A stretch of DNA of 64,000 nucleotides from Amoeboaphelidium protococcarum X5 (Eukaryota > Fungi > Aphelidiomycota), in NCBI GenBank assembly GCA_023515725.1, contig JALDTO010000146.1:124001-188000 (forward strand), written 5' to 3'. Made by a program: the position numbers and the translations under genes. Positions 5,283 through 27,474 of the stretch are shown here, piece by piece; the stretch's first letter is position 1; every line of letters starts with the position of its first letter. The notes under the pieces are model-generated. The model did no database searches and was not told the origin of the DNA. It saw only the letters and a list, made by a program, of their open reading frames with translations.

Positions 5283-6404
5283 TTAATAACCAGACCAATA
5301 TGAGCTACTTTTAGTCTGTGATTCTAAGGTATTACTTCAGTTTCTCTAGCAATGTGGAGTGATAATGATCAAACTAAAGAGAACAATTGTGTCAATCTTT
5401 AGAGTAAAAGAGAGAGAGAGGAAACCGAAAAGGGAAAAGATGAAACAGATCGAACAGCAGCGATGAAAAGAGAGAGCGAAAGTAGGCAGTGACGGCCAAT
5501 GAGATGATTCGAATTCGATCAGGCGCGCGTGATCTTGCGGTTCGTCATCGATCGACATCACTTTGTTGTTTCACATTGACACTTTGGTTGTATAACCGCT
5601 AGTGTGGTCCTCAATATAGTGACCAAACTCTGATAGCGTTGAAATTATTGTTGCTTTTCCTTTAAGCGTTTCAATGGATTTATTAACGGAAATCTCTTGA
5701 CTTTAGCTTCCTTTGCACCTCAGCTTCAATGTACACACGGTTGATTTTGTGCGTACTTGGTGAGACGATACGAACTTTTGATTCAAATTAGCGATTTGAT
5801 AATGCTCGTAATATAATAGAAAATGCCTCGGAATTGAGTATTGAGTCCCTTTAGACTCTCTAAATCCAGATAGAAAATAATTGCCGCGTTATTTGAGCGT
5901 ATTATAGGCGGGGTACTGTTGACTTTAAATTTTTATATATATCTAGACAGTCTAGCCTTAACAGACTATATAACAATTGGATGTAAGCTATCAAGATTTA
6001 ATTTGTAAAAATCAAAGTAAAAGATCTCAAACATACGTCAAAGCTTCCCGTTAATTACTCTGTGATATTAGTGTAATGTGCGTATACTCGGTACTCTGAT
6101 TTTGCAATACAAGCCAAATCTTTGCATAATCAGTTAAAGCTCACATTGAAGAAGTGACACTTTCCCGATTGACTATAAGTGTGGTATGTGAGTGTTACAA
6201 CTTTTAATTTTGCATGCTCTCCTCAGGTATGTTTCTTGTTACAATTTAGTGTTGATATATCCCCACAACCACCGCTGCCGGAATCTGTGAATGGGCAATT
6301 TGCGGCTTATATCATCTAATTAGTAATTAATCAGATTGCCTTCTCTCCCTCATTGCTATTGCACTGTACAGTATAGAGGTAGTAGCATAGAGTGATCATA
6401 CATA

Positions 6405-7724
6405 ATGGTTAGTTTTTGGTTTACAACTGTGACTCTGCTCTTACCGCAACTAATCTTCTCTGTCCAAAATCGTTATTATGGCCTTGATATGAGCACTAGT
6501 GTTAGGGTGAGCTCTGATGGCTCACTCTGGATGGCGGGCTCGTTAGGCGGTAAATACGCTCTCTACCATTTCTCTCCTGCTACCTAGAGCCCAATCGGTT
6601 CAATTACCACTTTTGGCGAAGGATCAGGTAACGTCATATCTGCCATCAGCATCGACTCTGCGACACAAGAAATTTACGCTGCTGGCTCTTGCACTACGGC
6701 GTTCAATGGCTAAACTCTGATAGGTGGTGGTGATATTGCTCTGGTCAAGCTTAACCGTGTTGGTACTGTGATGTGGACTATGATATTTGGCTCTTAGTAT
6801 CTCGATGTCCCCAAGTCTGTCTTTGTTGACTCTTACAATCAGTTTGTGTATGTGGTTGGCTACACAAATGGTAAGATTAACAAGGGCCTCGACACTTAAT
6901 CAGCAGAAACATAGTGCTTCATTTCCAAGTATTCAACTGATACGACTCATATATGGACGATTCAGAAATCGGCAGCTGGTGGCTGCGAATATAGATCTAT
7001 AGTTGTGTCTACGAATCCGAATGGTTACCTGTATGTTGGTGGTGTCTTCAGTGGAGTCCACGCATACTTTGGGGTCTTCTCTCCAACTAACGGGGCACTG
7101 CTAAAAGAGTTTGAACTCAGCTCTGATTTTGGAATCTCTGGCTTCAATGCGATCGCTCTAAGTCTCGCACAGGATAAGGTGTATGCTGCCGGTTTCATCA
7201 GTGCTCCTATTGACGGATCATCAACGTATGGTGGTTATGATTTCTGGGTTACCGCATTTGATTCAAGCGGTAATAAACTTGCGTAGAGTATGGTTTATGG
7301 CTCGCCTGAAGCCGATGTTCTTGAGGCAATTGATGTTGATTTCTTCTCTGGCAATGTGTGGGTATCTGGATGGTCTCGAGGATTGCTGATTTCTGAAGGC
7401 TACTTTACCTTGGCCCAGCTTGGTGTCCTCACTGCAGATGGTTATTTTGCTGAAATAAATCCCGTTACTTTGGCTCGTGGTACTTCGTAGTTGTTATACA
7501 TGGGCGGTGCTCCTTGGGAAGATATTGGCAGAGGAATCGTAGTTGATGGTTATGGAATCGTTAATGTCGCTCACCACTTTTTCTATAATACTGATCAATA
7601 TGGCACTTTGCTTACTGAAAATGCGCAATAAAGGCCATTGCAAGCTATGATAACCACTGCTACAAAGAAGATTACGACTACAACAACTACCACTACCACG
7701 ACTACAACTACCACAACGACAACC

Positions 7725-7757
<33 letters not shown>

Positions 7758-9365
7758 CCGACGACTCCGACGACTACGACTACGACTACAACCACTACTA
7801 CGACTACAACAACGACCACTCCTACGACGACGACCACTACTACTACCACCACTACGACCACCCCTACTACTACTACTACCACTGCCACCATTACTACTAC
7901 TATCACTACTACGACTACGACTACAACCACGACCACTACTACAAGAGCAACTCACACTAGCACAACAACTACTACCGCGACAACGACGACAACGACGACG
8001 ACAACAACAACAACCTTTACTCCTACTATCACTACTACGACTACTCCAACTATAAGCGCGACCGAAGTCGCTGCATCCATCACTGCATCTGCTTTTACTT
8101 TATTTAGTGTATCTACTGTTGCTGTGACTAATACTTCTACTGCGTAACTTGGTTTGTCGGCGTCAAGTTTAATGTCTGCTAACAGTTCGATGACGGTTAC
8201 AAGTATGCCATCTTCAATGTCGGATAGTAGCCTGAATGTTTAGAACTCACTCACCAGCTCCTAAAATTTCTTGTCCTGTGCATTCTGTGGGCCTTTCAAT
8301 GGTGTAGGAGCCGTATCTAAAAGCAGCACCACCACACAAGATCAGCGAGATTTAGTGTAACCCGCAAATTCTAATCCAAATGGGTAATTTGCGGTACAAG
8401 TGCTTAGTATTTTGGCCTATGTGATTATAGCTTTGGCATCTATTGCTGCCAGTCTTTTAATGCTGAGGAGATATGGGCGCAAAAGACCAATGTTTGCTGA
8501 TAGTACAAAAGCTGGTACAGAATCTACTTACTAGCAGAACACTGCATCAGTTTTTGGAACTGCTATGTAGACTAACACTACTGCGCTGCCTACCAATTAC
8601 GCTATTTACATCCCAGCTTTCCTCAGGTTTAATTTTGGGGTTGACTTTTAGGTGCTGAATTATATTGCTGCCGGTGGAATGTCCAAGATTTACATGGCTC
8701 GTCCTATTGCTCCATCACTGGTTTAAAACGTTGGAAGTGACTAAATTGTGGCAAAGGTTAGTAAGCGTCAATTTACTTAAATGCAAGCTAGTGAATAGCA
8801 GGCCTTTTATCAAGAGCTTAGTCTACTGTACAAGTTCAGAGATGTTCCGTCAATTACAAAGCTGCACGGCTTTTGTGATACTAACGAAGCCGTGATGCTG
8901 ATCAAATGTTATCATATGGGCGATTTATCTGATTATGCTCTTGGATAGAGCAGCGCTGCTGAAATGTATCCGATGTCCAAGAATTAGTTGCATAAACTGT
9001 TACATATTCTGTCTCAAACTATCGCTTACATGCATAGCCAGCATATTGTACATTGTGATCTAAAACCGCAAAATGTGCTGTTGGATGTGGATGAGAATGG
9101 TTGGCTTATTCCTATACTTTCAGATCTTGGTATCTCTGCTATCACGGACGATAGCGCTCTATTAGTGTAAGCGTTCCAAGTTAGCTAGTAGCGTGGATTG
9201 TCTCTATCCTATGCTGCGCCTGAGCTATTAACTAGATTCAGAATGCGCTTTACCGAAACATCTCCTCATATTTTGAAAGCTGGTGATGTGTACGCGCTGT
9301 CCATAATCATTGTCAATCTGCTTACTCGCACTAAGCCTTGGTCTGTCTAACAGCGCTTCTGGTGA
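6405..9365 (+). CDS. Receptor-like protein kinase 1: signal peptide, SBBP-like beta-propeller, Thr-rich stalk, TM, kinase domain truncated after subdomain IX
   Basis: One frame of 986 aa with TAR=Gln. GGGDIALVKLNRVGTVMWTMIFGS and GGYDFWVTAFDSSG repeats; poly-Thr at ~7670-8045; TM VLSILAYVIIALASIAASLLML followed by RR; IAAGGMSKIY, VAK, HCDLKPQN, DLG, YAAPE, DVYALS. Confidence 0.88.
7670..8045 (+). repeat. ACN trinucleotide low-complexity tract encoding a poly-Thr mucin-like stalk
   Basis: Mixed ACT/ACA/ACG/ACC codons in frame within RLK1. Confidence 0.9.
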
Positions 9366-9552
9366 ATGAAATGGTTGAAAGAGAGAATTGTAAAAAGCAA
9401 ACGAAGGGTCATACAGGATGAAAGTAACGCAATGTAATAGAAGATGATACAGGTTGAAAGTTTATAATCTTAAGTTATCAGACTCGTAAAATTATTTTTC
9501 TTGACGCACATAAAGCACGACGCAATAAAGTAGAGTGAGACTGCAGCGAGAT

Positions 9553-10914
9553 TCATGTTAGCATAAACTTCACATTAGAGTAATGGTCCAGTAGAGGCAC
9601 ATCTCCAGACACAGTTTTACAGTTGTCTAGCTGTCCATACTTGAGAAAAAAGTCGCGATGCTTCATTACCTAAACATCCAGCATATCTTTCTACTACACA
9701 TCCTCCTATGTAATCAGTCGGTACATTGAAGACATTAGTTCAAAGTCCGTGGCAAAGAATATATCGAACCATCCTTTGGGTAGTAGATACGTGGTACAAG
9801 GTATCATCTAGAAACGCTACCGAGTCTAGGCTATAGGAGCATTCAATCCAGGAATTTTAGTCCGCAAAGAGTCAAAATCTGACAGGATCAATTTATGACG
9901 CGGGAAGTATTACGATAATTACTTAAAAAATTGCATCTACATGGTGGGAATCCACTCAGGTTCAGAAAGGCCAACACCAAATGGATTAAACTTCTGTCTG
10001 AGGCGATCCAACATGCTCATCTACTAAACTACGGGAGATGGGCAGCCGATTATCTACGATCTTAACTCCAGATACTCCTATATCAGATCATCAGTCACCG
10101 GCTAATAGCTTTCCACAAATTTATCCAATTCAGGGTCAAAATGCACCAGAGTCTCGTATGGCTATTACTACTACTTTGGATGGGAATCTAAACTCCATCG
10201 CACGGCATCATGAGCAAAATTGTCAATCACCTCAAGTGCGATGAAATAACACCTTCTACTCTCAACCTTTTTCCAATTAAATATGCTTTTGTTAATAATA
10301 TTGATATTCCCATGTTATTAAACAGCTTTCCTGAGTTTCTATTTCTTTGCCAAGTTGTCTGATATTTCTATAATGTTGTACTCTGCAGATTCGTATAGCG
10401 ATCGATTCTTGCTCTTGACGTATGACATTACATCCTTCATTAACGTACCATTTCCAGCTCCCATCTCATAAATTACCAAACGTTCTTCTCCATACTACTT
10501 CTATTACTACTCATGATTGCGCAAAATATACTCGGCAATGGCATTTGCATAGTGGGGCCGAAATAATTCTGTGGGAGTATGCCAAATCTGAGCACTGGCA
10601 TCATCTTTCAGCTCATCAAATCTCTTATAATAAGATGAAATTAAATCCTAAAACTCCCCAGTATTCTTAAGCTAACTATAATCAATAGGTCGAGGCAGTG
10701 AGAATATCAGAGCGCGTTTACTAAAGTATCCATACTCTGGATTGTACAAAGAGTCATGTATAAACTCTCTCGTCAACTCCTTCTAAACACCATCATGACG
10801 CGTAATATTGTTCATATTCGCCACTTTAGAACCTTGTAATTGGATAGAGAATCTGACTGTCTATCGCTTATAGAAGCGTTTGCTTAGCTGTATCGAATAT
10901 CGCGCAGTTAACAT
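9553..10914 (-). CDS. Mitochondrial SAM-dependent methyltransferase, NDUFAF7/MidA (DUF185) family, fungal type
   Basis: LTREFIHDSLYNPEYGYFSK, LNAPIAQTR, TYLLPKGWFDIFFATDF; Arg-rich N-terminus; 453 aa; not visible in the standard-code track. Confidence 0.85.
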
Positions 10915-11499
10915 CGTTGTGAGTATATCAAATGTTCTAGAGCTTTGAAGATTTAATAACGCCAAGTAGAGTCAAGACGATAAAACGCGGTAAATGTAAA
11001 ATTCAAAGTAATCTATTCCACACATCATTGAAAAGTTGTTGTCAAAGCATCATTTTCGTTGATCATTCATTACGCAATACTTGACTTGGTGTTTGATAAT
11101 ACACTAGTCACTTTACTATTGCCCGTATTATCATCATCATCATCTCCGTCACTCCCAGTGTGAATGACAAAATTCGTGTCTACAAACGAGAGACTATATA
11201 AAGGCTTCAGTATACTCTCTAGCAGTGGATCTTCTTTGAAACTAGAGGATATGTCAATTGGTGCGCTGAGTTCTTGATCTGCACCGGTGATAGTTGCTAA
11301 TGCCAGACCTGCCTATTCTCTTCTTCTACGTTCAGGTGATGGAATTTTACAGTCGTTTTGCAACTGCGACAATTGTCGCTGCTCTGATTACACCATGTGC
11401 GACATTTGTCGCTGTTGAACAATTCTAATTCTAAGTTGAACCAAGACAGTAGACAATGAAACGAATGGTTTTGATAACCGTATTCGAAGTCCATTCTCT

Positions 11500-11856
11500 T
11501 CAGGGCACGTTTTATGACGAGATTGAACTTTAATCAGTTCTGTCAATGCAGCTTTTCAACTCTGTGACATTTGTCGCACATGTCTTAGTGAAAAAGTTTG
11601 CTTTATCCAACACGAGGAATATGTATTAGTTTAATTCAATTGCTGTTTGTACATTCAAGCTAATCATCATTTTGTGTACTGTAAAGAGGTCTCTAATAGA
11701 TATTTATAACACTGACACGCTACTTGAAACGTCGTCCTTTTTCAACGACTGAGTATCAACAATCTGGATGGTTTTGATACGTTCGATCTTTGAAAAGGGA
11801 GTCTCTAGAAAAATCCCCTCAGAGAACTCACGACTTTACACGGTTTCCTGTTTCAT
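11500..11856 (-). CDS. Hypothetical protein (118 aa) or gene fragment
   Basis: ATG..TGA frame with TAR=Gln (MKQETVQSREFSEGIFLETPFSKIERIKTI...); no recognisable motif. Confidence 0.25.
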
Positions 11857-11981
11857 TGCACTCAATTGAGTAATTATAGAGCAAGTACGCGTTGATCGAG
11901 GTTGGTACTTTCTACAACATCGTAGTAGTTTTGTTTCTCAATCTTATCATTTGTTACAATCAAATTTGCTGTACTTTGATC

Positions 11982-13367
11982 ATGTCAAGATATCAAGGAA
12001 TTAAGTTTCAAAAGTTTAAATATGGTCAAGTAATTTTTATTTCTATATTTGTAAATTCAATTTGGCTAATTTTCTATATGCTGGCAGATATTAGACATGG
12101 ATTAACTAATGCTTTTGATCATGTGCAGGTGGCATCACTAGACTGGAAATTGCGATGCGAGATGCGTAAAATGCCAATGATTATTGCGCACCAAACAGAT
12201 TCATTCTGCATCTAATGGGAAACATCTTGTCCACTCGTAGAATCTGCATTGGTATTAATTAGCAAGTACCAGAATGGAACACGAAATTCGGTCATTATTC
12301 CGTCCGTGCTGGCATATTCATTTGATTCATCCCATTACTTTTACCGTTCCTATCTTAATATCAGTCAGGACAAGGATCCTAAAACTTAATACTCTTACTA
12401 CATTAAATTTTAGTACGATTCTGATGGTTAATAAAGGAGAACTCGAGTGTTTGACACTAGAATTCGATTCCATCCTGATGGGTATTAGATGAGAATTGCG
12501 TTCGTGTCTGATAATTAGTACAAGGCGACTGTGTTTAATAAGCTATTGGACTCGTTAACTCTTCTGAAATATGATTACATTGTCCATGTGGGTGATGCTG
12601 TATAGTCATTCGATTCACTGGCTGAGTGGGAGGTTGATTTTGTGTGGCCCATGACTAGAGGTAGAAATGGAAACTCTGCTGGACTTCTCAGCACTACCCC
12701 TCTAATATATATTCCTGGTAATCACGATGATTATGAAGAGCATGACCGTGATACTACCTCTAATAACGGTGCAGAAGTCACCCAATCTGGTGGAGACAAC
12801 TCGCCGTTTCACTATTTTGTGACGACGCGCGATCGTTTCAAGTCTCTTCGCATTGGCCATCTGCATTTTACTTTAATTGACTCTAACCAGGATAGTGCAA
12901 GATAGTAAGATTTCGTGTAGTCTCTAGTCAAGCAGAATGAGTATAAAGAGTCCTAGTTTCGAATAGCTCTTATCCATATTCCGCCATATTTGGAGTTTTG
13001 GGAGCATGACGCGTGGTTCAATAAGAAAGAGTCAATGTGGGGACAGTTTGTACGTGACAAATACATGCCGCTAATGAAAGAGAACGGTTTAGACGTTGTA
13101 ATTTCAGGCCATCAGCACAACTATGAGAGGACATCCAAACGAGTGAATGGAACGTACTACTTTATTATTGGTGGTGCGGGCGGAGAGTTGGAACACACTG
13201 AACAGGATGGTGGACGTGTAAATAACTTCAACATGTATGATTTCAAGTTCTTTGGGCACTTTTACTGTATGATGGACGTTTACAATGGGTCCATCCTGTG
13301 GCGAGCTATCGATGCTGAAAGTCGAGTTGTTGATAGTCTAACTCTTGGTGTTAATTAAATAAAATGA
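11982..13367 (+). CDS. Membrane-anchored calcineurin-like metallophosphoesterase (purple acid phosphatase-like architecture)
   Basis: N-terminal TM, FN3-like segment, motifs AFVSDNQ, HVGDAVQ, PGNHD, LIHIP, SGHQHNYER; TGA 13365-13367. Confidence 0.85.
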
Positions 13368-13610
13368 TTGTCGAATGATGATGTTTCGCACTAAAGCAAG
13401 CCGTGTAAAATCCCCCCCCCCCTCTTGCTAATCGCTGATTGGCCGCGACGTTCTCAGAGAGCTAATCAGATGGCGCACAGCGATCACCTCATGAATTCAA
13501 TTCTTATCTTATCTCTCTTAATCCTCTTGCTCTGCACTCACGCTGTTATATTTTCATTAAAGTTGAAATTAAATTGGAACAGTAACAATAAATAATTTAT
13601 TTTTATATAT

Positions 13611-16600
13611 ATGAAGAGTGATCACGAAATTCAAGTGGTGACAGCAATTTGTGATTATAAGCCATCAGCTGCTGGACGGCTCTGCTTTGGTGAGGGAGAT
13701 TAGATTCGAGTGCTTCAACAGACTGATAGTGGATGGTGGGATGGGGTTTGTCATGGACAGAGAGGCTGGTTTCCGTCTAATCATGTCCAGCTTCCCCCTT
13801 AAAATATTAAAGCGGATTTGAATGAATATTTCGGATGGGAAGTTTAAGTACCACTAGTTGGATCTCCTAAAATCAGTAATAATACTCAGCTAATAGTGAA
13901 CAAGCTAACTGGTGAACGCGTTAGAATTCCCAATGTTGAGATGGCTCAATCTCCACGTCAGAGTATTCTATCTGTTAATGTTGCCAAAATGAAGATTTCT
14001 GAAGGCCGCGACTCTATGCCTTTGTCTCCCCTACATCCAGTTATTAACGCTCAGTAATAAGAACTGGCCATTCCTGATTTTGGATTAAGCTAACGATATT
14101 CCAGCGTGTCAGTAGTTGGACATTAAAGACACAACGATGCAGAAAATATTCTTTAAAATGATGGTATTAATAATAATGATGATGATGTAGATTACGCGTT
14201 GTAACCGCACGATTGGGAGAGTATGAGATAAATGATTCTAAAGTCTATAGTGTTGCTCAAGAGGGCTGAGCTAAAGGATTTCATCTTGGTAGTTGGTTAG
14301 ATTATAAAAAGTGTTCATGCCATGTTATCTGCCTCAAATACATTAGAAAAGTCATCCCATCTGCTTTAGAGTAATCAAATGCTCAAGTCTCATTATTAGC
14401 ACCTGATCAAGTCATTGTGTGCTCTGACTGATTACGCAAAGTCTATCGAGTCTAACAGTATGCCTCCACCATCTGGCCAAGACGGATAACGGCGGCATTT
14501 ATTGCATCTCTCTAATGAAGTGTGGCTCTCAGTTCGACACTTTACTTCCACCGCTGAATAGGCTAATGTTAGTATCCAAGTGCAATAGAAGCTGCATCAG
14601 GAAGCGCACAGTTTTGGAGTAGGAGGAAAGTCACCTTCGATGAGATCAGCAACCTCCTCTTCACACGTTTCCGTTGTGAATGTATATGACACTTTAAGCG
14701 AGTCTTTGGATGAGTTAATCACGGATGTCAGTGATGCAATATCTGGTGTATGGAAGCAATTGTCCTCAGAAACTCAGTAAAAAGTCCCGGATCTGATTGA
14801 ATGCACCAAAGAAGTTGTGACTTAGATCGGTTACTTGCTGTCTTTATTGGACGAGTTTAATCAAGAGCATTTTGACGCGAGGCACTCGGCAATGTATGAG
14901 TACTTTTTGTAATTGAAAGAGAATATGTATCTACGAATATCTGAGTTGGTTAATGCAACTACTGTGGCTGTAGATCCATTTGCTCCTGCAGATCGTGTTT
15001 AGTCTCTTAATTCCTCTGTATAGAATGTCTAGGCTTCATTGCGCGATTTGATATTATCCGTCCGTCCACTTTTGTAAGTTTAGAAGGAGTAAGCTGCTCT
15101 ATCTGCCTCATCCAGAAGGAAGGAGTCTTCATCTGATCACTCGTCATGTGTTGAAGTATTTTCACCTTTGGATGAAGAGATCAAGCCTCGTAGAGCTTTC
15201 TCTATGAACCTGCTGAAGTAGTCTTTGGATTAGCGATAGTCAAAAGATAAGGAGAACTTGCGCAAGAATGAACTTGTATCTGACTCTGTAGTAGAATCCA
15301 ATGGCGTAAATTAGTAGCCTGCAAAGCGGCAATCAAAGTTGACTAAAGAAGATTTTGAAGCTTAGTAGCGCCGTCGAATTACAGTTGTTGGTAGTGAGAC
15401 TAAATTGGGCAAGTTTTTTGGTGAGGATGTTGCTCTGGTTGAGTAAAAGTTGCGCAAAGGGAACGAGTTGGATTTCCTGAAGGTTAGCTACAGTTCAAAG
15501 GCAGTCCTACTAGGAGCTAATGGTGAATTAAAAGGTGCAACTTTGAAAGGAGTAGTCGAAGTAATGACTGCGCATGATAAATTTGACGTCAAGCTGATGC
15601 ATAGTATTCTACTCACTTTCCGATCATTTGCCACTAATGTGGAGTTATTCAATCTGCTGACAAAGCGGTTTGTTTTAGAGCCCCCAGGTGAATTGTCGTC
15701 TATGCAGCTGGAAATTTGGCATGAAAAAGTTCTGACTCCTATTAGATTGCGAGTAGTGAGCGTTATTAAAACTTGGTTAGATTCTTATTATTTAAAAGAC
15801 TAGGACGAGAAATTGCTTCCTCTAATGCGCCGATTTATTGATGGACTAGTCAAAGAGGTGTTACCATCAGGATCCACGATGCTTCTTAGACTTATTGATA
15901 AAGTTGCGAAATTACCTGACGATTAGCTCGTCTAGTCAAAGAGACTGACATTCATTATTGGATCTCATAATGCTTCGACAGCTCCATCCTCGCCGATGAT
16001 GCCGCGAAGCTTTAGTTCCATCCTCGAACTTGATCCTCTCGAACTGGCACGTTAGTTTACAGTGCATGACTTTGTTCTGTTTGCCCGTATCGATATCACG
16101 GAATTTCTTGATAAGTCTTGGTCCATTAAGAATGACAATTCTAAGTCTGCTAATGTTAAGCATCTCATAAAGATGTCTAATCAAACCACTGCATGGGTTG
16201 CAAGCGTCATCCTTTCTGAGGAAGATCCTAAAATTCGTAGTCAGTTGCTAAAGTATTTTATTTAGGTGGCTGACAAATGTTTGGAGCTGAAAAATTATAA
16301 TACATTGATGGCTATTCTGGCGGCTGTTGGTTCGTCTTCCATACATCGCTTGAAGAGAACTTTTGATTTGCTTTCGAACAAGACCGTGTAAACTCTGGAT
16401 AAGTTGCGCGATTTAATGTCTCCACATTAGAATTTTACGAAATACAGGCGGCGATTGGAAGAGTCAAAGCTGCCTGTGTTGCCATTCCTCGGCCGCTTCC
16501 TCACAGATTTGACTTTCATAGAAGATGGTAATCCTAGCACTTTGAACTCTCATCCTGACATGATCAATTTGGATAAAAGATTAAAGGTGGCCAATCGCAT

Positions 16601-16796
16601 ATTTGACATCTATCAGTATTAGCAGACCAAGTTTAATATTCAGCGTATCGATGCCGTTCAAGACCTGATTGATTTATGCGTAAATTAAGCACACGCTTCA
16701 AGTGAGATGCTTTACGATCTGAGCGTAAAATTGGAGCCAAGAGAGTAAGACACTGAGAAGATGGTCAGACTGTTGAATGAAAGTGGTTTTTTGTGA
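13611..16796 (+). CDS. CDC25: Ras guanine nucleotide exchange factor, Cdc25 type (SH3-REM-RasGEF)
   Basis: SH3 (AICDY..GWWDG..RGWFPSNHV), REM (LLTFRSF, RLRVVSVIKTW), GEF (LPFLGRFLTDLTFIEDGNP, INLDKR), fungal-type tail LEPRE..MVRLLNESGFL-TGA. Confidence 0.92.
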
Positions 16797-16925
16797 ATAG
16801 AAATTAATTTTTATATTCAGATAGTTTAGCTGTAATTGCATTCACTTTTATATTTATAACATCGTATTAAAAATCATCATTCATCCATTTGCCTAAAAAA
16901 GCTCACGCCCATGAGGGAGTGCAGA

Positions 16926-19900
16926 TCAGTTCAGACGCTCCAACTCCTACAAAACTGCGGTTGCATCCAACCGAATCAAGAGATTCTACTCCCAGGACAT
17001 CGCAATAACATTAAATAAACCTTGCAAACGTTCATCTTCAATAGTTTGCTTAATTTCAACTCTCTCGCCATTGAGTACAGCGTCACGAATCTGATCTTTA
17101 GAGAATCCTTCCCACGCTGGTTAACGATTCAGCAACTCGGCCATTATAACAGCGCCTGCAAATATGTCTCTTTTAGGCTTCAGTGCATCAGACACGCCTT
17201 CATCAGCCCAAACTTCTGGTGCGGCATAACATGGAGTCTAACCTTTTAGTCTATTCCACTTGAGACCAGTCACTGCTTTGGAAGTTCCTAGCAGAGTACA
17301 GATGCCAAAATCAGTAAGACAAAGTCTTGTTGCACCAGTAGACGTGTCAATCAGGTAATTAGCCGACTTAATATCATTATGAACTATACTTGCTTAATGT
17401 ATAGCTTACATGGCTGCAAACACGTCCATAGACAGAGATTTAACAACATCAAAAGTCCAAGGAATCAGTTGACATAACGGACTGCTTTAATTAATTAAAC
17501 CATCCAGTGATCCATGCTCATAATGGAACATCAGAAGCACCTGATTCCCTGCATCAAAGCCCGCAATTCTAGCAACGTGAGGACAATCTTTGAAGCGCCA
17601 CATCAATGCAACTTCCTACAAAAAGGTGTCAGAGTTACCATTGCCGTTATTGTACTTTCCTACAAAAGTCAGCTTTTCAAAAGGCTTAACAGGATGCTCA
17701 AAAGGAATACTCAGCATCTCAACTAGCCATATAGAGCCCTGTCCACCACCTGAAAGACGTGAATTAGCTATCTTCCTAAAGTTCTAGCCTTCTTACAATT
17801 GCATGAATGCAGGCACAGAAATCTCATACGATGTCGGCATCATTGTACTCCCTTAGGTACTACTGATACTTTATACTTGCGTCATGTGAGTCGAGGTAGT
17901 ACTCTACATCGTATTAGTTGTTAATTTAGCCATAAGCGCACGAGTGCGCGCACGATACTTATACCGCAGTACCAAAGCAATTGCACAAAGCATCACGACA
18001 AATGCTGCGGCCATCGCACCAGCAATAGTGACAATTAGAGAAGAACTGACACTGTTAGCACCGGTCACTGCCTAGTCCTTATCTGCAGAACTAATTATCT
18101 CAGATTAAGTTTGGCTACTACCACTATATTAACTATTTATAACATCAAACGCATGTGAAGGTTAACTGGTCATCATACGAGAGCTAGTAATGGACACTAA
18201 AGACGTTACAATACTGCGCTAAGAAGTAGATCTTATTGTGGAGCTCGTCAAACTTGAGTTCATAGCCACAGCGATAGAAGACGATGTAGCATTTGTACTT
18301 ACAAAAGCCAGTGTAGACAATGTGTTAAATTCCAAAGATGTAACGGTACCAGAACTAGAGGCGACAACAGTACTGCTCACAGTAGTGGTTGTAGAATTAA
18401 TCACAGAGCTTGCGGCACCGATACTCGAAGTTTCCACAGGATTTGTCGTACTAAGAGTACTGATAGTAGATGTAATAGTTGTCGTGGTCGTGGGAGTAGT
18501 AGTAGTAGTAGTAGTAGTTGTTGTTGTTGTTGTTGTTGACGTTGACGTTGTAGTGGTTGTAGTGGTTGTGGTGGTGGTCGGAGTTGTAGTCGTTGTGGTA
18601 GTAGTTGTCGTCGGAGTAGTTGTTGTCGTCGTCGTCGTTGTTGTTGTAGTTGTAGTGGTAGGAGTGGTGGTAGGAGTAGTTGTTGTCGTAGTTGTCGTTG
18701 AGGTAGTGGTAGTGGTGGTAGTTGTCGTGGTGGTAGTGGTGGTTGTAGTAGTAGTAGTCGTTGTCGTAGTGGTGGTAGGAGTAGTAGCGGTAGTAGCAAC
18801 AGACGATGATGCAACACAGTTACCTCCAGAAGGACTCAAAGCCAGCAAATTATCGACGCTACTAAATCCCGTTTAGTCCAATAAACTTACGAAGCCATCA
18901 GTACTATTCATCCTAAAACCTGTGCCGTAATACAGATATGCAACTAAGAATGAGCTGCTTTCATAGAATATAGCAGAATTCAGATTAACCTATGCTCCTG
19001 TTTAACCATAAAACATGTTGATACCGGAGAACTTTTTAGCACAATCGACAGACAAGATAAATCCATACTAGCTAACTGCAGAGTTATATTGTGCCACCTA
19101 TGTGCCGGTTACATTCACTTTGATCGAAGTGACCGGTGACATTCCAACAAAGTACATGTTATTCCTACTGTCCCACTAGATTCCAGCTCTTACATTGCCA
19201 GAGCCGGTGACACTGGACCACTCCTGGATTGCCAAGCCATTAGTAAACTTAAACGCATAAGTACCATTGACTCCAGCTTAACCTGCGGTAACATAAAGGA
19301 CATTAGAGCCATCAAGAACTTAAAACTAACCACCAGTCTGTATCGACGCATAAGCAGCACCATTCTTATCGAAAGACACTCCAACAGGACTTTACGTGCC
19401 GGCACCAACAAATTTCCAGCTATAGCGATAGTTTCCGGTGGGTCCGTAGACCATGACAAAGCAATTGGCAGCATTACCGGCAGAAAAGTAAACCTACTAT
19501 TCACTAGAGTCTTCCACGTTGAGAAACTACACAGTGCTTAGCTGGAAGTACAGATTACCACTTGCATCAATTGCCAGCTGAGAGTCAATAGTCACGGTGA
19601 AATCGTCCAGTTCATAGACAAAATTGAGATTGTTGTCCATCATAAACACATGATGGCAACCATCACTAGATTTAACAAGAGTCTTCACATTGTTGTAAAA
19701 GGTAATGGGATCTGTAGCGCAACCTTCAATTTTCTGGTGAGCATGCACAACGACTTGTCCGCTAAAGCCAATAGCACTACTCAAAGCTTTAACCGACTGA
19801 ACACCATTATCTAGACTGGCAGAAGTCAGAAATGTACCATCACTAGCAAATTTCGCAATCACCACTTGATCTGGGCCCAGTCGACTGACAGATTTGACCA

Positions 19901-20300
19901 ATGCTTAATTAGTGCCATAAATACCAAGGCTAGGAGAGTCTGACTCAATAACAGCAATGATGTTATCAAAAGAATCAACAAACAGATTTTTTACTCTATC
20001 AGTGCCTGAGCCTCCAACAGAGAAATGCCACTGCAAAATACCATCAGAATTGTACTTGGCAATATACGCGTCGGTGCCACCCAGCTACAATGCTGTTAAA
20101 ACGGGGCCACTTGACGAGTACAAAGGATAGTTTATCTCTTGCACTAAATCATATGCGTAAAAGAAGCCTTACGAATCTTTTCCGGTCACCTTTACACCTG
20201 TGCCTTGCGAATACACTTGCCACACCAAGCCAGCGCGCACCACAGAGAGATGAATCACATACAAAATAGATGCTGTCAATAAAGTTTAACTGAATTTCAT
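16926..20300 (-). CDS. Receptor-like protein kinase 2: signal peptide, SBBP-like beta-propeller, Thr-rich stalk, TM, complete kinase domain
   Basis: 1124 aa. GGTDAYIAKYNSDGILQWHFSVGGSGTD; poly-Thr; TM LIVTIAGAMAAAFVVMLCAIALVL followed by RYK; LSGGGQGSIW, FVGK, HNDIKSAN, DFG, YAAPE, MSWEQNLLIR (subdomain XI). Confidence 0.9.
18470..18795 (-). repeat. Poly-Thr coding tract (stalk of RLK2)
   Basis: GTN trinucleotide runs on + strand = ACN codons on - strand. Confidence 0.9.
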
Positions 20301-20420
20301 TCTAATAGCAATAATGTAGATTCTTAATAATTGTACTAGCGAATAACGAGTATAGATTATACGAAGAAAGGGATAAAAAGGAGGGAGTACATGGTGCAGA
20401 GGTAAAAGATGCAAATAGGG

Positions 20421-20430
20421 CTATTTATAG
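20421..20430 (-). promoter_or_regulatory. Candidate TATA box of RLK2
   Basis: CTATAAATAG on - strand ~120 nt upstream of the ATG at 20300. Confidence 0.35.
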
Positions 20431-20859
20431 ATGCAATGACAACATTCAAATGGAAAATCCTTACATTCTAGAAATCTGCCATTATATAAAGTAAAGTGCT
20501 GGCGATATACATTTAATTACCAATTAAGATGGCCACGAGCATCTATAAAATGATTGTGGTTACCATAAGGCGGTAGATTGTGTGCCAATTGATCGCATAT
20601 CGCGACGGTGTCAATCAAGACGCATTGTTATCAAATGTTCGCCTCCAACAGATCCCACAGTATACAGTAAAAGTGTCCATAATATCCACAAAGGCATACT
20701 GTAAATTAAAAAAACATTTTGCGCGTTCCGTGCGAGAATGGAAATAGATGAGGAACATTGTTCAATGATGCTATAAAATTGAATTGAGAGTCGAAAATTA
20801 AAACTTTAACACAAACTAAAAGTTTTAATACCAGTTATAAATCAAAAATTCAAAAAATA

Positions 20860-20932
20860 TGCTCGGTACAGGGATCGAACCTGGGACCTCAGCGTTATTA
20901 GCACTGCGCTCTACCGACTAAGCTAACCGAGC
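20860..20932 (-). tRNA. tRNA-Ile, anticodon AAT (IAU)
   Basis: GCTCGGT acceptor stem, D arm TAGCTTAGTCGGTAGAGC, anticodon arm CAGTG-CT-AAT-AA-CGCTG, T arm GGTTCGATCC; T6 Pol III terminator just downstream. Confidence 0.96.
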
Positions 20933-21150
20933 AAGGGGATGATATCCTAATTCAGATAAAATTTTACCACCAGTCAAGATATATAATGTATGAAAAGAGT
21001 GAGCAACATTGATAATAACAATAACACGCGTCAGTGGACGATAATGATATTGATCACACTTGTCAACTCATAGTCCGCTAGTGGTAAAAGTTGTATAGTC
21101 CTCAGTTGTAATACTAATATAATCCTCTTGTTGCCAGACTAATTTTAAAC

Positions 21151-21855
21151 ATGATGGATTAATTAGCGTATTATTTACAACATCATCGGATCAATGAGTA
21201 ATTTGTCGCCCACGGTTTACCGGTAGCATTTTTACATGATCATGCTAAAATCGCAGGTGGAGCTCTTCAACTAATAAATTACCATAATATGAATCGTGGA
21301 ATGTGCCATGATTGTGTGTTTATTGGCATATGGGGTGTTAATGGGCGAAATTGCTTCCCTCTTGATAATGATGGGATATCTCTTATGGCGGACGGGACGT
21401 TGAGCACATATGCCGGGCAATTGCTCAATCCTTAAGCAAGAGAACGCGCGTAAGCCCCTCATCTGCTGAACGCAGACTTGTGGTTTTGCGTTGTTCATTT
21501 AAATAGCTAATTCGATAAGGATGCTGCTTAAACGGTCTTGATAGCTTGGTGCAAATACTTATAAAGAAATAATTGCCTCAATGTACAGTATTCCTTCTGC
21601 TCAGCTTTACTTACATTGCTGTCTTCTGATTATAACTTTTAATTGCGTCTCTGCCAAACGAAATTGCATCAGCACTGCAATAATTGTACCGCTCATGAGC
21701 GAATCAACTGTTCCATATGCGTAATCATCGTTATTTCAGTTCAAATCTATCAAAAATATTCCCAAAGTCAAGAATCCAGGTTCCTTCTTGTGTTTTTAAC
21801 TAGCACACTTTAAGCGCACCCAGGCCGTGATTCTCATCAGTTGTTCAAGCGTTGA
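21151..21855 (+). CDS. Hypothetical protein or decaying ORF
   Basis: Longest TGA-free frame in the interval (open 21013-21855); no motif recognised. Confidence 0.25.
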
Positions 21856-22006
21856 CGCAGATCCGTCTGACACAAGACGAAAGTCTCCATAGTACATTAA
21901 CGCGTAACAAACGTCGAGTTCACCGAGTAAAGTCATTACTCATCTAAATACAAAGATAGTTTATTGTTATTAAAACACTTAAAGAGCCAACTTAAATGTA
22001 TTCACA

Positions 22007-22570
22007 TCATTCCGTTCCAGATTTCATATCAGAGAAACCATTCTTGACGCGCTCAAAAGATGGCCACACCTTAAACAAGACAACTCCTTTGATATTTCGC
22101 AACGGAATGCATCCATAATGTCGACTATCTTCGGAATGAGTGTAATTATCACCAGCCACCCAGCAATGATTCGGCGGAACTTGTATACTCGAACTATCAG
22201 CATCTAGCGGTCGTGGGATTATTCGATCGTGTGGAAGGCCAATAAGACGTTTTGATATCAGCATATTGCGATTATATGGGTGCTCACAACAGAGTACATC
22301 CCCCCGTTGCACCTCATGATATAAAAACTCTGGTAATATCCGCTGCAGTATACCACTCTGTCGTTAGTTAGGCACCTTGATCAGTCTACTAACCACCATT
22401 TTATCACCGGTAAAAAAGTTTGGTAGCATAGAATCTCCAACACCTTCGCTAATATCCACAATGTAATCAGATGTCCATTATAAGAGTATACTCAGAGGTA
22501 TAGTAATCTTTAGTATTGCGCGTAATTCTTGTGCCACAAAGCTCCACCTAACTTTATTCGATATCGTCAT
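22007..22570 (-). CDS. IMP1: Mitochondrial inner membrane peptidase subunit (S26, Imp1/IMMP1L-like)
   Basis: GDSMLP (catalytic Ser), RGDV, SKRLIGLP (catalytic Lys), VPPNHCWVAGDN, SEDSRHYG, VWP. Confidence 0.88.
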
Positions 22571-23590
22571 ACAGTGTTCAATAGCGGTCGCGTTTTTATG
22601 AAATTTTCAAATCGAACGCAAAATACGCTCAATTAAAGTCCGAAATTTTAAAAGATGGTACCATTAGAAATGGAATATTTTACAGCTCATAATACATACT
22701 CTGAAACTGGAACCCACAGGACGTATTGTTGTAAATCAACTTTACTGAATGGATGATCATCAGGAGGAGCAGATGACTTTTTGTAAGTACACTTATCGGA
22801 AAGATAATTATCCGGCGCGACAAAAGTAGTAATTATTCAACTTGTAATTGGCAGATACTTCATGCACATCTTTCCCGATATCAAAGTCAAAATTGACCGT
22901 GAATTTAAATATGACACAGCCAGACTGCCAAGCATCAACCGAATCGAAATACTTGAATTGGGCTCACAGTAGATATTCAACTGATTGTTGTTGTGATCCT
23001 CATACGCCACATCAAGAGTTGAGAAATTATTGACTGAACTGTTGGCGTTCTTAACGTCAATCTCTGTAATGTCGGTTTGAGTCTGGCGCGATTTGTTCAC
23101 TTCATCAGGAGACATCAATTGCGTCGTAAGAACTTGCCACCTCCACAAAGAACTTGATGAGAAATAACATCATACCACCTTCTTCTCAGACGTGAAAATG
23201 TCCTATTCTAACTCAATGGTGTGTTTTTTTCAGCTAATTCTATCCATTAAAAAGCGCAAGCAAAGTGTCTCTAATCGTCGCAGTTATCTATGTTAGCAAG
23301 TTTAGGCCCGTTAAATTATAGTTACCGGCAAAAAGAATAGTCTAATTTAGATATCAAGTTGTTGATCAATTATAGCGATTTCCTATTAAATCGCGCCTGG
23401 AGTGCTAGACGCGTTAAAAAAGCTCAATACAGCACGAAAGTAGACGTTACAACTCATTCGAATTGACAATAGATCTTTGTACACAGTATCAAAATAGCAG
23501 GTGTGTGGCTTTCGGCTACCTTGCAACAATAGGTGCATTTCGAAAGAAGCTTCAAATAATATTACCAAGGTTCAACGCTTTAACATGCGA

Positions 23591-26500
23591 TCACTTCTTT
23601 CTGTTGCTGTGCTTCTGCCCAGGAGATTGTTACTATTTCTTTGCCTGAAGAATCTTGACATTTGATGAATTAATAAGCTGAATCTTTGGACTATCCCAAT
23701 CTGGTCCTTTCCAATTCATCTTACGGCCGTCTTCATACAGCTTGTGCAGATAAGTGTTTAACTTACCACTACGCTCCAGTTCAAGATACTTCTCATATAG
23801 GAGCAGCGCAGTCTTGGCATCTTCCACGCTATCATGCATATGAGACTAAATATCCAGCTTCAGAACGTACCATGCAAGAAATCTCAATGAAATCTTTCGC
23901 TGACCCTTGATACGGTATATAGTCACAGTATCTATCACCTGATAGTCTGGCACAAAGATATTAATAGTCCTGAAATCCTTACTCAGTCCATGACCTACAA
24001 AGATGCATCCAAGATCAATAAGCGTCCTCAGCTAAAGATAAGCCGCCTTTCTATGAACCAGCCGCTTCTTTGACTTTTACGGATCCAAATCATCAGGCAA
24101 AATTCCACTATACTCGGTCAGATAATCCTAGACTGGCTGTGATACCAATATATAATCATCCACAAACGGCTTCAAATACGAAGGATCTTGACCGCGCAAA
24201 AGACTTAATCTCGCAAGCTGATTCATTTGAGGCCTCAGCACTGAGCGCGAGCCATCTGATCTGAATTCAATCTGCTCTTGAGACACAGAGACAAACTCGG
24301 CATCAATTGCAACCAGAAACTTGTCTTATATCTTCATAGCCTACTCATACTCAGAGTATTGAAGAGGAGTGACCTTGTTCTAAGATGGATTGCGATTTAG
24401 GAATACCATGTTAAACGTATTGTGAACCGGCTTCATTTATCGAATATCCTGGAAACGTGTAACCATTTCTAACGACTATTCACTAAAATCTGCTCTCGTA
24501 TAATGCAATATAGAAGGCTGCTTCCACTAAGACTTCATCTACAAGACTTCAAACGCCGATACCGGTCGAACGATGAAATCATTGAACATGTACCACTAGC
24601 CACTAATCTTTGCATATGTGAATTGGTTTACTGATTACGGTCGGGTATCAGACTAGGAAACATCAACAATGTTAATCACCATTCCTGTAAGATGATATTC
24701 TGTGAATTATTAATCAGCATCAGTCACGTTGAAGAGAAGCTGCTAATTTAGCTTAAGCGTTGACTGTATAAAAGTCTTGTCCAACAAGTCCTGATTTAAA
24801 TACCCAAAATCCTGCCATTACTTCTCATACTTGTCAATACTATCCTCATCAGGCAGATAAAACTTGAAATGCACATCCTTGGTCCTCCACGCTGACCACT
24901 TTTAAGTGCCCGTCAGAAGCGTTAAACTCTACGGCATAGACTGCAAGACTCTCTCCTGATTTAAAACTTTATAATTTTTACACTTTTAGCACCAAGCTTT
25001 CACTGTGCACAACTTTTAAATACTCAAGCAGATCAGCGATTATAAAGTGAGAGGAGACTAGAGCTTCTGCACCTCTTCCGCATTCAATAAATCTACAGTG
25101 AGTGGCAAGATTTCGCGTTCGTTCACTCCATGACAGTCACTGCAAGTACTCTTCAAGATCATTGGAACGCCATACATAAACTATATAGGATTCTACAGAG
25201 GATGTAATTTATTGATTATGGAATCCCCAATATGCTTCTACAGATACTCGAGATACCACTTGTAGACATTTTGTAGGGCAATACCCATGTCACCATTAGG
25301 ATTAGTCAAAAGTCCAAGGGCGGAAATCTAATCATTATTCTTGAAGGCACTAAGTAAGTTCGACGCCTAGCAATTGACTCCTTTCGCATTCTTGAGCATT
25401 GCAGCGAGGAAGGAGAGTTCGCATATTAGGCACTCTTCCACTAGACATTTAAATTCAGGCGAGGCATGTAGATGAGCTAAATCAGAGAGCATGAACTACT
25501 CACCATCACGCTAGAAACTGTAAACCATAAGCTAAAATATAGAATTCAAATAGTCCACGTCCAGATCATTTTCAAGTCCGCTGTATGTCTAAACTCTATT
25601 AAAATAAGTAAAATCAAAATCTTCGACTCCCAACTTGGAATAAACAATCTTTGGGCGACGATAATGTTCCGGAATGGTATTGTAGGATAGTACACTCCCA
25701 GACTCACTTTGCGGTGTAGACACGCTATTCTACAAAGGTGTAAGTGGAGTGTGAGACCGCGGATAAGGTGACGATGACAACTGATCACGCTCAATCTAAC
25801 TCTTGAACTTGACCCCAGAGTCCTGTTGTTAATAAACCGTATTCCTCTTCTGTCCCTTGTTAGAGTATGGTGCATAACCTACATAAGAATCCCACTTGGC
25901 CACACTGAGAATCTCTTGGGGGATTGGCATAGTTGGTAAATTCTAATGTTTCCATGCCTGCGACAGTTGGCCTGACAAAAGACTTTCCTTACTAGCAGGC
26001 ATACCCACGGTGGACAAGGGGACATTATGATCATCGAAATTGATAAAAGTCTAATCTTCACAAAGTGGAGTCGGGAGTGGAAGCTTACCAGACGTCACAT
26101 TCACAACCACAGGGACAGACGAGTTAATCTTATGCAATCTAAGTTGCCCAAAAGAGTCAAATGTCAGCATTAGATTGTCCGATTGAGATAATGAAGCCCC
26201 ACTGCAATCAGGAGCAAATCTCTAAGCGGACACGTCCTTATTAACTGAAATAAGTGTTCCATTAGACAAAATTACTATGATCTTGGAGCTTACAATTGAC
26301 ACTTGAATAATCTAAATCTAATCGTTCTAATCAAAATTTGCAATATCTTATAAGCTGAATACTTTAACTAGTTCCACTTCCTCTTAACAAGACAAAGAAT
26401 AAACACTTTACTATGAATGAATCAAAGCCAGTTTTTCTCTCTGCCAAGATACTACTGCATTCTTAATCTCAAACTGCTTGACAGTATGAAAGTTATTATG

Positions 26501-26995
26501 AATGTCTTTAACTAGAACTTTGCCACTCTGAGTACAACAAATTAGATATCCATCACATCTTTTCATACTCAGCACTATATCTTCAGTTCTAAAAGCACCC
26601 ACCTACTTTCCGTCAGCAACATCATGCAGCTATAGAGTGAGATCAGAAGTTGAGACGACAATATATTTGGAGTCGATAACAGCTACATGATAGAAATAAC
26701 TTGCCATATTAGAACTATTGTCGCATTAATACTGTATGAGGCTTTTATAGCTGTAAACCAGAAGACAATTATAGGACAGCAAAATATATCCCTTCTAATA
26801 CGGCAAAATCTAATGAAATCCCATAGAAGCAGGCGGTGTAATTCTAGTATAAATCTCCAGCATGGTGGCATCATTACAGACTGCGTATTGAGTCACAGAG
26901 ATACCATCATAGACATACAGAGATTCATTCTATAATGAGAATGCAGCCAACTAAGCTGTCAAATTATATACACATTTAACTTGAGGATCTGTCAT
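23591..26995 (-). CDS. PAN2: Poly(A) deadenylase subunit Pan2 (WD40, pseudo-UCH, DEDD exonuclease)
   Basis: [63 protein letters not shown]; single frame of 1134 aa. Confidence 0.93.
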
Positions 26996-27474
26996 TTATA
27001 TTTATTGACACTATATTTTTGAGCAATAATTATCAAATAAAACTTAGGTATTAAACTATTGTACTGCGACACATAACAATGAAAGGGAAGAACAAGAGAT
27101 AAACGAAGAAGGAACGTTGATTGTTGTTGTATCTGCCTGCAGTAAACACAATGCAATGTCTAACGCGCGGTGTTGTTTTATGATGACAGACAATGGTTAT
27201 TACCGACACAATTAATGATCAGCAGTAACAACTAGATATGCGGCGAGGTATCAAATGGCAAGTAAAATTGAGTGCCAAACGCGTAAACATCTGACCAACT
27301 TGCCATTCTTTTTTATCGCCGTAAAATTTGACTAAAGGAATACAGAGGGGAGCGGTCGTTTCAGCCTTAAAGACGAACACTCACGTTATAACTGAAAGGC
27401 TTGCAATCCTAGCTGAGAAGCTAAAGAACAATAAAATGACTAGAATATAAATTGCAAAATGTGCTTTATTTATT

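Follow-up and report, generated by a model that had tools for sequence, protein, structure and literature searches.

The stretch of DNA analyzed here, called the window below, comprises 64,000 nucleotides (nt) of the aphelid Amoeboaphelidium protococcarum X5 (contig JALDTO010000146.1, positions 124,001 to 188,000) and contains two genes that probably encode single-pass receptor-like kinases (RLKs) with ectodomains related to the SBBP propeller of bacteria. Gene A (6405..9365, forward strand) represents an A type and gene B (16926..20300, reverse strand) a B type of such receptors. When read with the standard code, the open reading frames (ORFs) within 5500-21500 are all short; frame 0 from 6405, for instance, holds 15 TAG and 15 TAA codons, and its first TGA occurs at 9363. 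Across the whole window (1-64000), TAA and TAG stand for Gln and TGA is the sole stop, and nearly all genes become long single exons once they are read in this way. A UAR-to-Gln code is on record for Amoeboaphelidium protococcarum (PMC5304391). Under this assignment (code 6), both genes are uninterrupted, with 986 amino acids (aa) for gene A, which ends at a TGA stop at 9363-9365, and 1124 aa for gene B. TAA and TAG together supply 26 of the 49 Gln codons of gene A and 35 of the 57 Gln codons of gene B.

Gene A, described here along the forward strand, opens with a predicted signal peptide (6405..6464, aa 1-20), identified by a hydropathy scan, which leads into an ectodomain (6468..7619, aa 22-405) with seven SBBP-type blade positions located by Pfam, phmmer, a blade hidden Markov model (HMM) and hhalign. 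A poly-Thr stalk follows (7632..8075, aa 410-557), in which 77% of the 148 residues are Thr, and then a Ser/Thr-rich membrane-proximal linker (8076..8390). The transmembrane helix (8394..8465, aa 664-687, from hydropathy) is succeeded by the sequence RRYGRKR and by the juxtamembrane motif PTNYAIYIPAF (8589..8621), which is common to gene A, the B-type genes and a metagenomic protein, P0156. The kinase domain (8637..9362) includes the glycine-rich loop (G-loop), the VAK Lys, the helix C Glu, the catalytic loop HCDLKPQN (9051-9074), which is of the non-RD kind (no Arg before the catalytic Asp), and the DLG and APE motifs.

Gene B, on the reverse strand, is organized in the same order. Its predicted signal peptide (20232..20300, aa 1-23, hydropathy scan) precedes an ectodomain (18861..20231, aa 24-480) defined by phmmer against a set of SBBP proteins, the blade HMM and hhalign. 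The poly-Thr stalk (18429..18821, aa 494-624) is 131 residues long and 78% Thr, and is joined through a Ser/Thr-rich linker (18045..18428) to a transmembrane helix (17967..18041, aa 754-778, hydropathy), after which come basic residues and the juxtamembrane motif PTSYEISVPAF (17805..17837). The kinase domain (16929..17768) is complete, with DFG, APE and subdomain XI present, and its catalytic loop, HNDIKSAN (17358-17381), is also non-RD.

Both proteins therefore share one order of parts: a leader, an ectodomain (about 385 aa in gene A and about 455 aa in gene B), a poly-Thr stalk, a Ser/Thr linker, one transmembrane segment, the motif PT.Y.I..PAF and a kinase. Signal peptides, the number of transmembrane segments and the type I topology were read from hydropathy alone: both proteins have a hydrophobic segment at the N terminus and a single further one in the interior, after which basic residues come. 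The stalks were delimited by composition; with 77-78% Thr across 131-148 residues they are mucin-like, and since their ACN codons are mixed, they are not pure microsatellites. The two genes are otherwise far apart. Their kinases are 25% identical (E 8e-23), their ectodomains yield a single 87-aa match (E 9e-5), and hhalign of the A- and B-family ectodomain profiles gives E 6e-5 at a probability of 65%. The preliminary description of this DNA, which had proposed two highly diverged paralogs sharing a leader, ectodomain, poly-Thr stalk, single transmembrane segment and non-RD kinase, thus holds for both ORFs, including the loop class (HCD in gene A, HND in gene B).

The continuity of ectodomain and kinase in gene A can be followed in four public runs from one 2021 study, in which contigs of a closely related strain cover 6624-7667 and 8306-9371, with similar depth over the ectodomain and the kinase within each run. 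A contig of run X3 continues from 9467, about 100 nt past the stop, as a run of A, which indicates a probable poly(A) addition site of the gene A transcript (9467, forward strand). From this poly(A) tail alone we infer that the runs are RNA, and the contig coverage together with the tail fits one polyadenylated mRNA for gene A. In X3, gene A was 20-40 times deeper than in the three other runs, and the neighboring gene after 9480 was not deeper; this excess may reflect stage- or sample-specific expression, contig depth being a poor measure of it.

It could be argued that the ORFs are artefactual, either through the chance joining of a secreted mucin-like propeller gene with a neighboring kinase gene or through bacterial contamination, and it is true that the poly-Thr region is spanned by no sequencing contig. 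We consider this explanation extremely improbable. At the TGA frequency of the window, a TGA-free frame would arise by chance with a probability of about 1e-10 for the 986 codons of gene A and 7e-12 for the 1124 codons of gene B, that is, in the range of about 1e-10 to 1e-11. The identical in-frame join is found in 25 genes and in the NCBI model of a paralog, P0011 ([quoted passage not shown]), which is encoded on contig C181 of the same genome and unites ectodomain and kinase in one protein; moreover, the sole poly(A) site observed comes after the kinase. Bacterial contamination was rejected because Gln-coding TAA and TAG codons lie in frame throughout the propeller-coding part, which identifies it as native nuclear DNA.

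The relationship of the ectodomains to SBBP repeats is supported by several lines of evidence. The SBBP-type motif (GG.D, a short stretch, K, G and then W) occurs at aa 107 and 276 of gene A and at aa 74 of gene B. Pfam SBBP recognizes one repeat of gene A (piece 6798-6896), and this only marginally, with 20.9 bits where the cut-off is 20.5; the same blade reaches 20.3-24.8 bits in paralogs. In-frame stops split the repeats into stop-free pieces and lower the sensitivity of Pfam; on such pieces the gene B ectodomain had no match, and a genome-wide scan with PF06739 marked only two places, both searches being too insensitive for diverged and interrupted repeats. For a broader comparison, a profile named A1, built from eight stop-free A-type ectodomain pieces, was run against 1.84 billion representatives and matched 5548 proteins at E<=1e-3 and 1468 at E<=1e-10, most of them in 5-30 stretches, with best E-values against SBBP proteins down to 1e-135. 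All 13 of the non-aphelid matches scanned contain Pfam SBBP, with up to 14 repeats and scores of up to 380 bits. Few of the A1 matches bear names, and those are bacterial, for instance “SBBP repeat-containing protein [Kiritimatiellia bacterium]”; one match stems from a Chlorochromonas data set. Similarly, phmmer searches with the code 6 ectodomains against the SBBP set returned 147 matches for gene A (best 1e-137) and 82 for gene B (best 1.6e-25), and shuffled sequences returned none.

An iterated single-blade HMM combined with hhalign assigned seven blade positions to gene A, five of the seven at a probability above 80%, and four to gene B, where aa 73-122 and 277-329 are secure, aa 141-187 and 351-389 are probable, and the remainder has diverged. 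The fold was predicted on P0011, whose ectodomain is 36% identical to that of gene A over 378 residues. AlphaFold2 modeled P0011:22-405 with a predicted local distance difference test (pLDDT) of 87.4 and a predicted template-modeling score (pTM) of 0.90, as 28 strands arranged in seven four-stranded blades. The best solved match to this model is the propeller of cyanobacterial CylK (TMq 0.80), and in the ESM Atlas the closest clusters belong to SBBP families of bacteria, with template-modeling scores (TM) of 0.83-0.87 across all 384 residues. Taking the fold from this paralog, the A-type ectodomain is modeled as a seven-bladed SBBP propeller, and by sequence comparison the gene B ectodomain is homologous to SBBP over at least part of its length. 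Our profile and phmmer searches and the predicted fold thereby corroborate the earlier proposal of homology to a mainly prokaryotic propeller, and the structure prediction it had suggested as a check yielded a confident seven-bladed propeller in an A-type paralog. Its claim of SBBP propeller repeats in both proteins stands for the seven blade positions of gene A; in gene B it extends to just two secure and two probable blades.

The cytoplasmic parts were recognized as kinases by Pfam Pkinase (PF00069), with colinear matches of 41.7, 21.9 and 11.5 bits on stop-free pieces of gene A and of 28 and 14.6 bits on those of gene B; the whole P0011 protein scores 77.5 bits (E 1.4e-21). The G-loop, the beta3 Lys, the helix C Glu, the catalytic loop, D[FL]G (DLG in gene A) and APE are kept in both genes, and the loop is non-RD in all 25 genes retrieved. 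The best solved kinase matches are B-Raf and EGFR (E 1e-9 to 1e-12). A weak pairwise match to a plant Xa21-like kinase (E 1e-6) aligns the catalytic motifs; with weak pairwise matches only, these kinases would not be filed under the plant RLK/Pelle (IRAK) group.

A marked difference between the types lies at the end of the kinase. In gene B and the B type generally the GHI subdomain (helices G-I, subdomains X-XI) is present and the kinase is complete, whereas it is absent from gene A and from all 16 A-type genes. Their proteins end about 10 residues past the sequence KPW, which comes after helix F, and the Pfam Pkinase match stops at about position 199 of 263. We also considered a decayed C-lobe in frame beyond the gene A TGA and rejected it, because translation past the stop gave unrelated sequences in 16 paralogs, several of them riddled with TGA codons. 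The absence of GHI, which the preliminary description had passed over, bears on the mode of signaling. One possibility is that the A-type proteins, gene A included, are pseudokinases or scaffold co-receptors that signal solely through a recruited kinase. The uniform truncation (16 of 16 A-type genes and P0156 end about 10 residues past helix F, with nothing conserved beyond the TGA) speaks for it, as does the Tyr that replaces the catalytic Asp in P0156. Nevertheless, the HCDLKP.N loop is intact in 16 of 16 retrieved A-type genes; the G-loop, Lys, Glu, D[FL]G and APE are kept in gene A and the aligned paralogs; purifying selection on the kinase is strong, with a ratio of nonsynonymous to synonymous substitution rates (dN/dS) of 0.06-0.17; and eukaryotic-like kinases without GHI can be active. 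Weighing these points, we regard a purely scaffolding role as improbable, though it deserves to be kept in mind. Separately, one A-type paralog (L005:3658-6111, C264:1761157-1763610) carries one TGA within its kinase match, so that its ORF ends in the kinase; this copy has either decayed into a pseudogene or been misassembled.

Genes A and B belong to a large family within this genome. A gene A ectodomain piece matched 21 places and the profile 23, corresponding to about 19 loci, mostly in tandem clusters on contigs C181, C137 and C155 and also on C264, C212 and C192. A gene B ectodomain piece matched 11 places on C207, C98, C142 and C154. No fewer than 16 genes of the A type and 9 of the B type (25 retrieved) have the full architecture, with Thr-rich spans that vary from 58 to 213 residues between paralogs and a Ser-rich stalk in one homeologous gene pair. 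The A-type kinase region, including the juxtamembrane motif, matched 104 places at E<=1e-10; by these counts, about one in four members of a much larger RLK family would be of an SBBP type, in keeping with the RLK expansion reported for aphelids. In this respect the earlier proposal is supported: these single-pass receptor-like kinases form a diversified family that is restricted to the lineage and tandemly expanded.

Many loci occur as collinear pairs (C181/C137, C155 58-73 kb/938-953 kb, C146/C207 and C98/C142) with 86-97% protein identity and a synonymous divergence (dS) of about 0.25-0.35, the pattern expected if the genome is a hybrid that holds two diverged subgenomes. Gene B has a counterpart on C207 that is 94% identical; for gene A, no counterpart more than 64% identical was found in the genome. 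Pairwise comparison of homeologs and of paralogs gave dN/dS values of 0.09-0.27 in the ectodomain and 0.06-0.17 in the kinase, which point to two functional domains under purifying selection, the ectodomain being somewhat freer. Recombination is indicated by two patterns. In a tandem A-type pair at L013 (C181:149000-158900; joined coordinates 20349-23051 and 24409-27429), dS is 0.05 in the ectodomain and 0.53 in the kinase, which suggests that the ectodomain alone underwent gene conversion recently. In several B-type pairs, the kinases are 83-84% identical and the ectodomains beside them 37-39% identical, a pattern suggestive of ectodomain replacement or very fast divergence.

Some relatives lack a kinase. 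The pair L010:3602-5203 and L012:4150-5958 encodes six canonical SBBP blades, a transmembrane helix and an 80-aa tail; these blades are the most canonical seen in the genome, with per-blade E-values down to 1e-14. Another pair, L019:1911-4496 and L025:663-3365, combines a B-type ectodomain with a Ser-rich stalk, a transmembrane helix and a 45-aa tail. Word-index protein searches returned P0011, its counterpart from another strain, a 148-aa fragment (P0155) and the metagenomic P0156, along with weak distant matches to two SBBP proteins (P0152 and P0154) and the plant Xa21-like kinase (P0153); they returned no database entries for the gene A or gene B proteins. The proteins recovered from databases carry the name “hypothetical protein.” P0156, from an 11 kb metagenome contig in the European Nucleotide Archive (ENA), has a signal peptide, a WD40-type propeller, a transmembrane helix, the juxtamembrane motif and a kinase that is truncated in the same way and 35% identical, with HCY in its loop, where Tyr replaces the catalytic Asp. 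The sequence is free of in-frame stops, so the organism behind it probably reads the standard code. In the window itself, three unrelated genes lie between genes A and B; among the sequences there, a 1108-aa ORF (13470-16796, forward strand) was judged by eye to contain an SH3 domain and a Ras guanine-exchange (Cdc25-type) domain.

Taken together, our findings make it probable that genes A and B encode type I single-pass Ser/Thr receptor-like kinases, which represent two diverged subfamilies of an aphelid expansion and combine a presumably O-glycosylated stalk with a propeller that may sense a ligand. The poly-Thr stalk would be heavily O-glycosylated and stiff, and would lift the propeller tens of nanometres off the membrane, through a cell coat or cyst wall. 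The propeller would bind something outside the cell, a glycan or wall component from the prey, the host or the parasite’s own wall being the most plausible ligand, and ligand-driven clustering would gather the cytoplasmic kinases and lead to phosphorylation of downstream targets. A-type proteins have no GHI subdomain, the part on which substrates and regulators dock, and would probably act as minimal kinases or signal via a partner kinase. A role in recognizing the host alga is offered here as a hypothesis.

The layout also brings to mind wall or adhesion mechanosensors resembling Wsc1 and Mid2, in which the Thr rod would serve as a nanospring, the propeller would be anchored in the organism’s own cyst wall or the algal wall, and the kinase would report strain. 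A long Thr/Ser-rich stalk above a single transmembrane segment is the hallmark layout of Wsc/Mid2 sensors, the stalk length varies widely between paralogs (58-213 residues in Thr-rich spans), and kinase-less versions with short tails exist. Against this, Pfam found no WSC or Mid2 domain on any piece scanned, Wsc/Mid2 sensors are not known to carry a kinase, and propellers that fall to 37-39% identity beside kinases that are 83-84% identical fit varied ligands better than one anchor. We judge strain sensing to be an unlikely role for these proteins, yet a live alternative.

Several observations weigh against the ligand-sensing receptor kinase that we favor. No contig bridging the poly-Thr region was present among the four runs. 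The propeller fold is taken from a paralog just 36% identical to the gene A ectodomain, and the gene B ectodomain is recognizable as SBBP in part only. An A-type kinase without helices G-I could be catalytically weak or dead, and AlphaFold2 reached a pLDDT of only 45 for the cytoplasmic domain of P0011, with a shallow alignment. Finally, a fast-evolving recognition system might show positive selection, and no overall positive selection was seen on the ectodomain (dN/dS 0.09-0.27).

Neither receptor kinases as such nor their expansion in aphelids is new. The expansion of receptor-like protein kinases in this group is reportedly the subject of Mikhailov et al. 2022 (Curr Biol; cited in PMC10608142), and our genes come from the same group of organisms and belong to the same class of proteins, with about 100 loci of the A-type kinase kind in this genome. 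In the literature searched, which had the primary genome paper outside it, we did not find the SBBP propeller on a poly-Thr stalk, the A-type kinase without GHI or the kinase-less relatives.

Comparison with other known systems helps to place these features. Bacterial SBBP proteins (PF06739, including Leptospira LipL53-family lipoproteins) and CylK have homologous blades and the same seven-bladed fold as that predicted for the A type. Unlike the products of genes A and B, the bacterial proteins are secreted proteins, lipoproteins or enzymes without a eukaryotic kinase. The aphelid blades have diverged, and just one gene A repeat passes the Pfam cut-off. Plant non-RD kinases with leucine-rich repeats (LRRs), such as Xa21, FLS2 and EFR, are likewise type I single-pass proteins with non-RD loops (HCDLKPNN in the Xa21-like kinase, HCDLKPQN in gene A); however, the aphelid ectodomain is an SBBP propeller rather than an LRR domain, it stands on a mucin stalk, and the A type is without GHI. 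An extracellular propeller joined through one transmembrane segment to a cytoplasmic kinase is also found in Mycobacterium tuberculosis PknD and in animal MET and RON. Their propellers belong to other families (NHL in PknD, Sema in MET/RON), the topology of PknD is opposite, MET and RON are Tyr kinases, and none is known to have a poly-Thr stalk. The resemblance is best seen as analogy and not homology. Fungal Wsc1 and Mid2 share with genes A and B a Ser/Thr-rich, presumably O-glycosylated stalk over a single transmembrane segment, but the aphelid proteins have no WSC domain and, except for the kinase-less relatives, carry a kinase in place of a short tail.

Aphelids form the sister group to Fungi, and receptor kinases are largely missing from the true fungi; the SBBP propeller is otherwise typical of bacterial surface proteins. 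A more far-reaching scenario, which we put forward as speculative and rather doubtful in its entirety, is that an Amoeboaphelidium ancestor acquired its SBBP propeller from bacteria and joined it to a eukaryotic non-RD kinase module, and that tandem duplication, gene conversion and ectodomain swapping then produced a repertoire of receptors akin to those of pattern recognition. Together with kinase-less partners resembling receptor-like proteins (RLPs), these would read glycans on algal or bacterial surfaces for host choice, and the A type would be an undescribed minimal eukaryotic protein kinase able to work without GHI.

A large and selectively maintained family of surface receptor kinases in a parasitoid of algae bears on how a pre-fungal phagotroph senses its prey and also on what the evolution of osmotrophy cost. 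The conserved kinase without GHI would represent an unusual natural minimal kinase. In microalgal cultures grown commercially, where the parasitoid is a pest, the family also provides candidates for the molecules that recognize the host.

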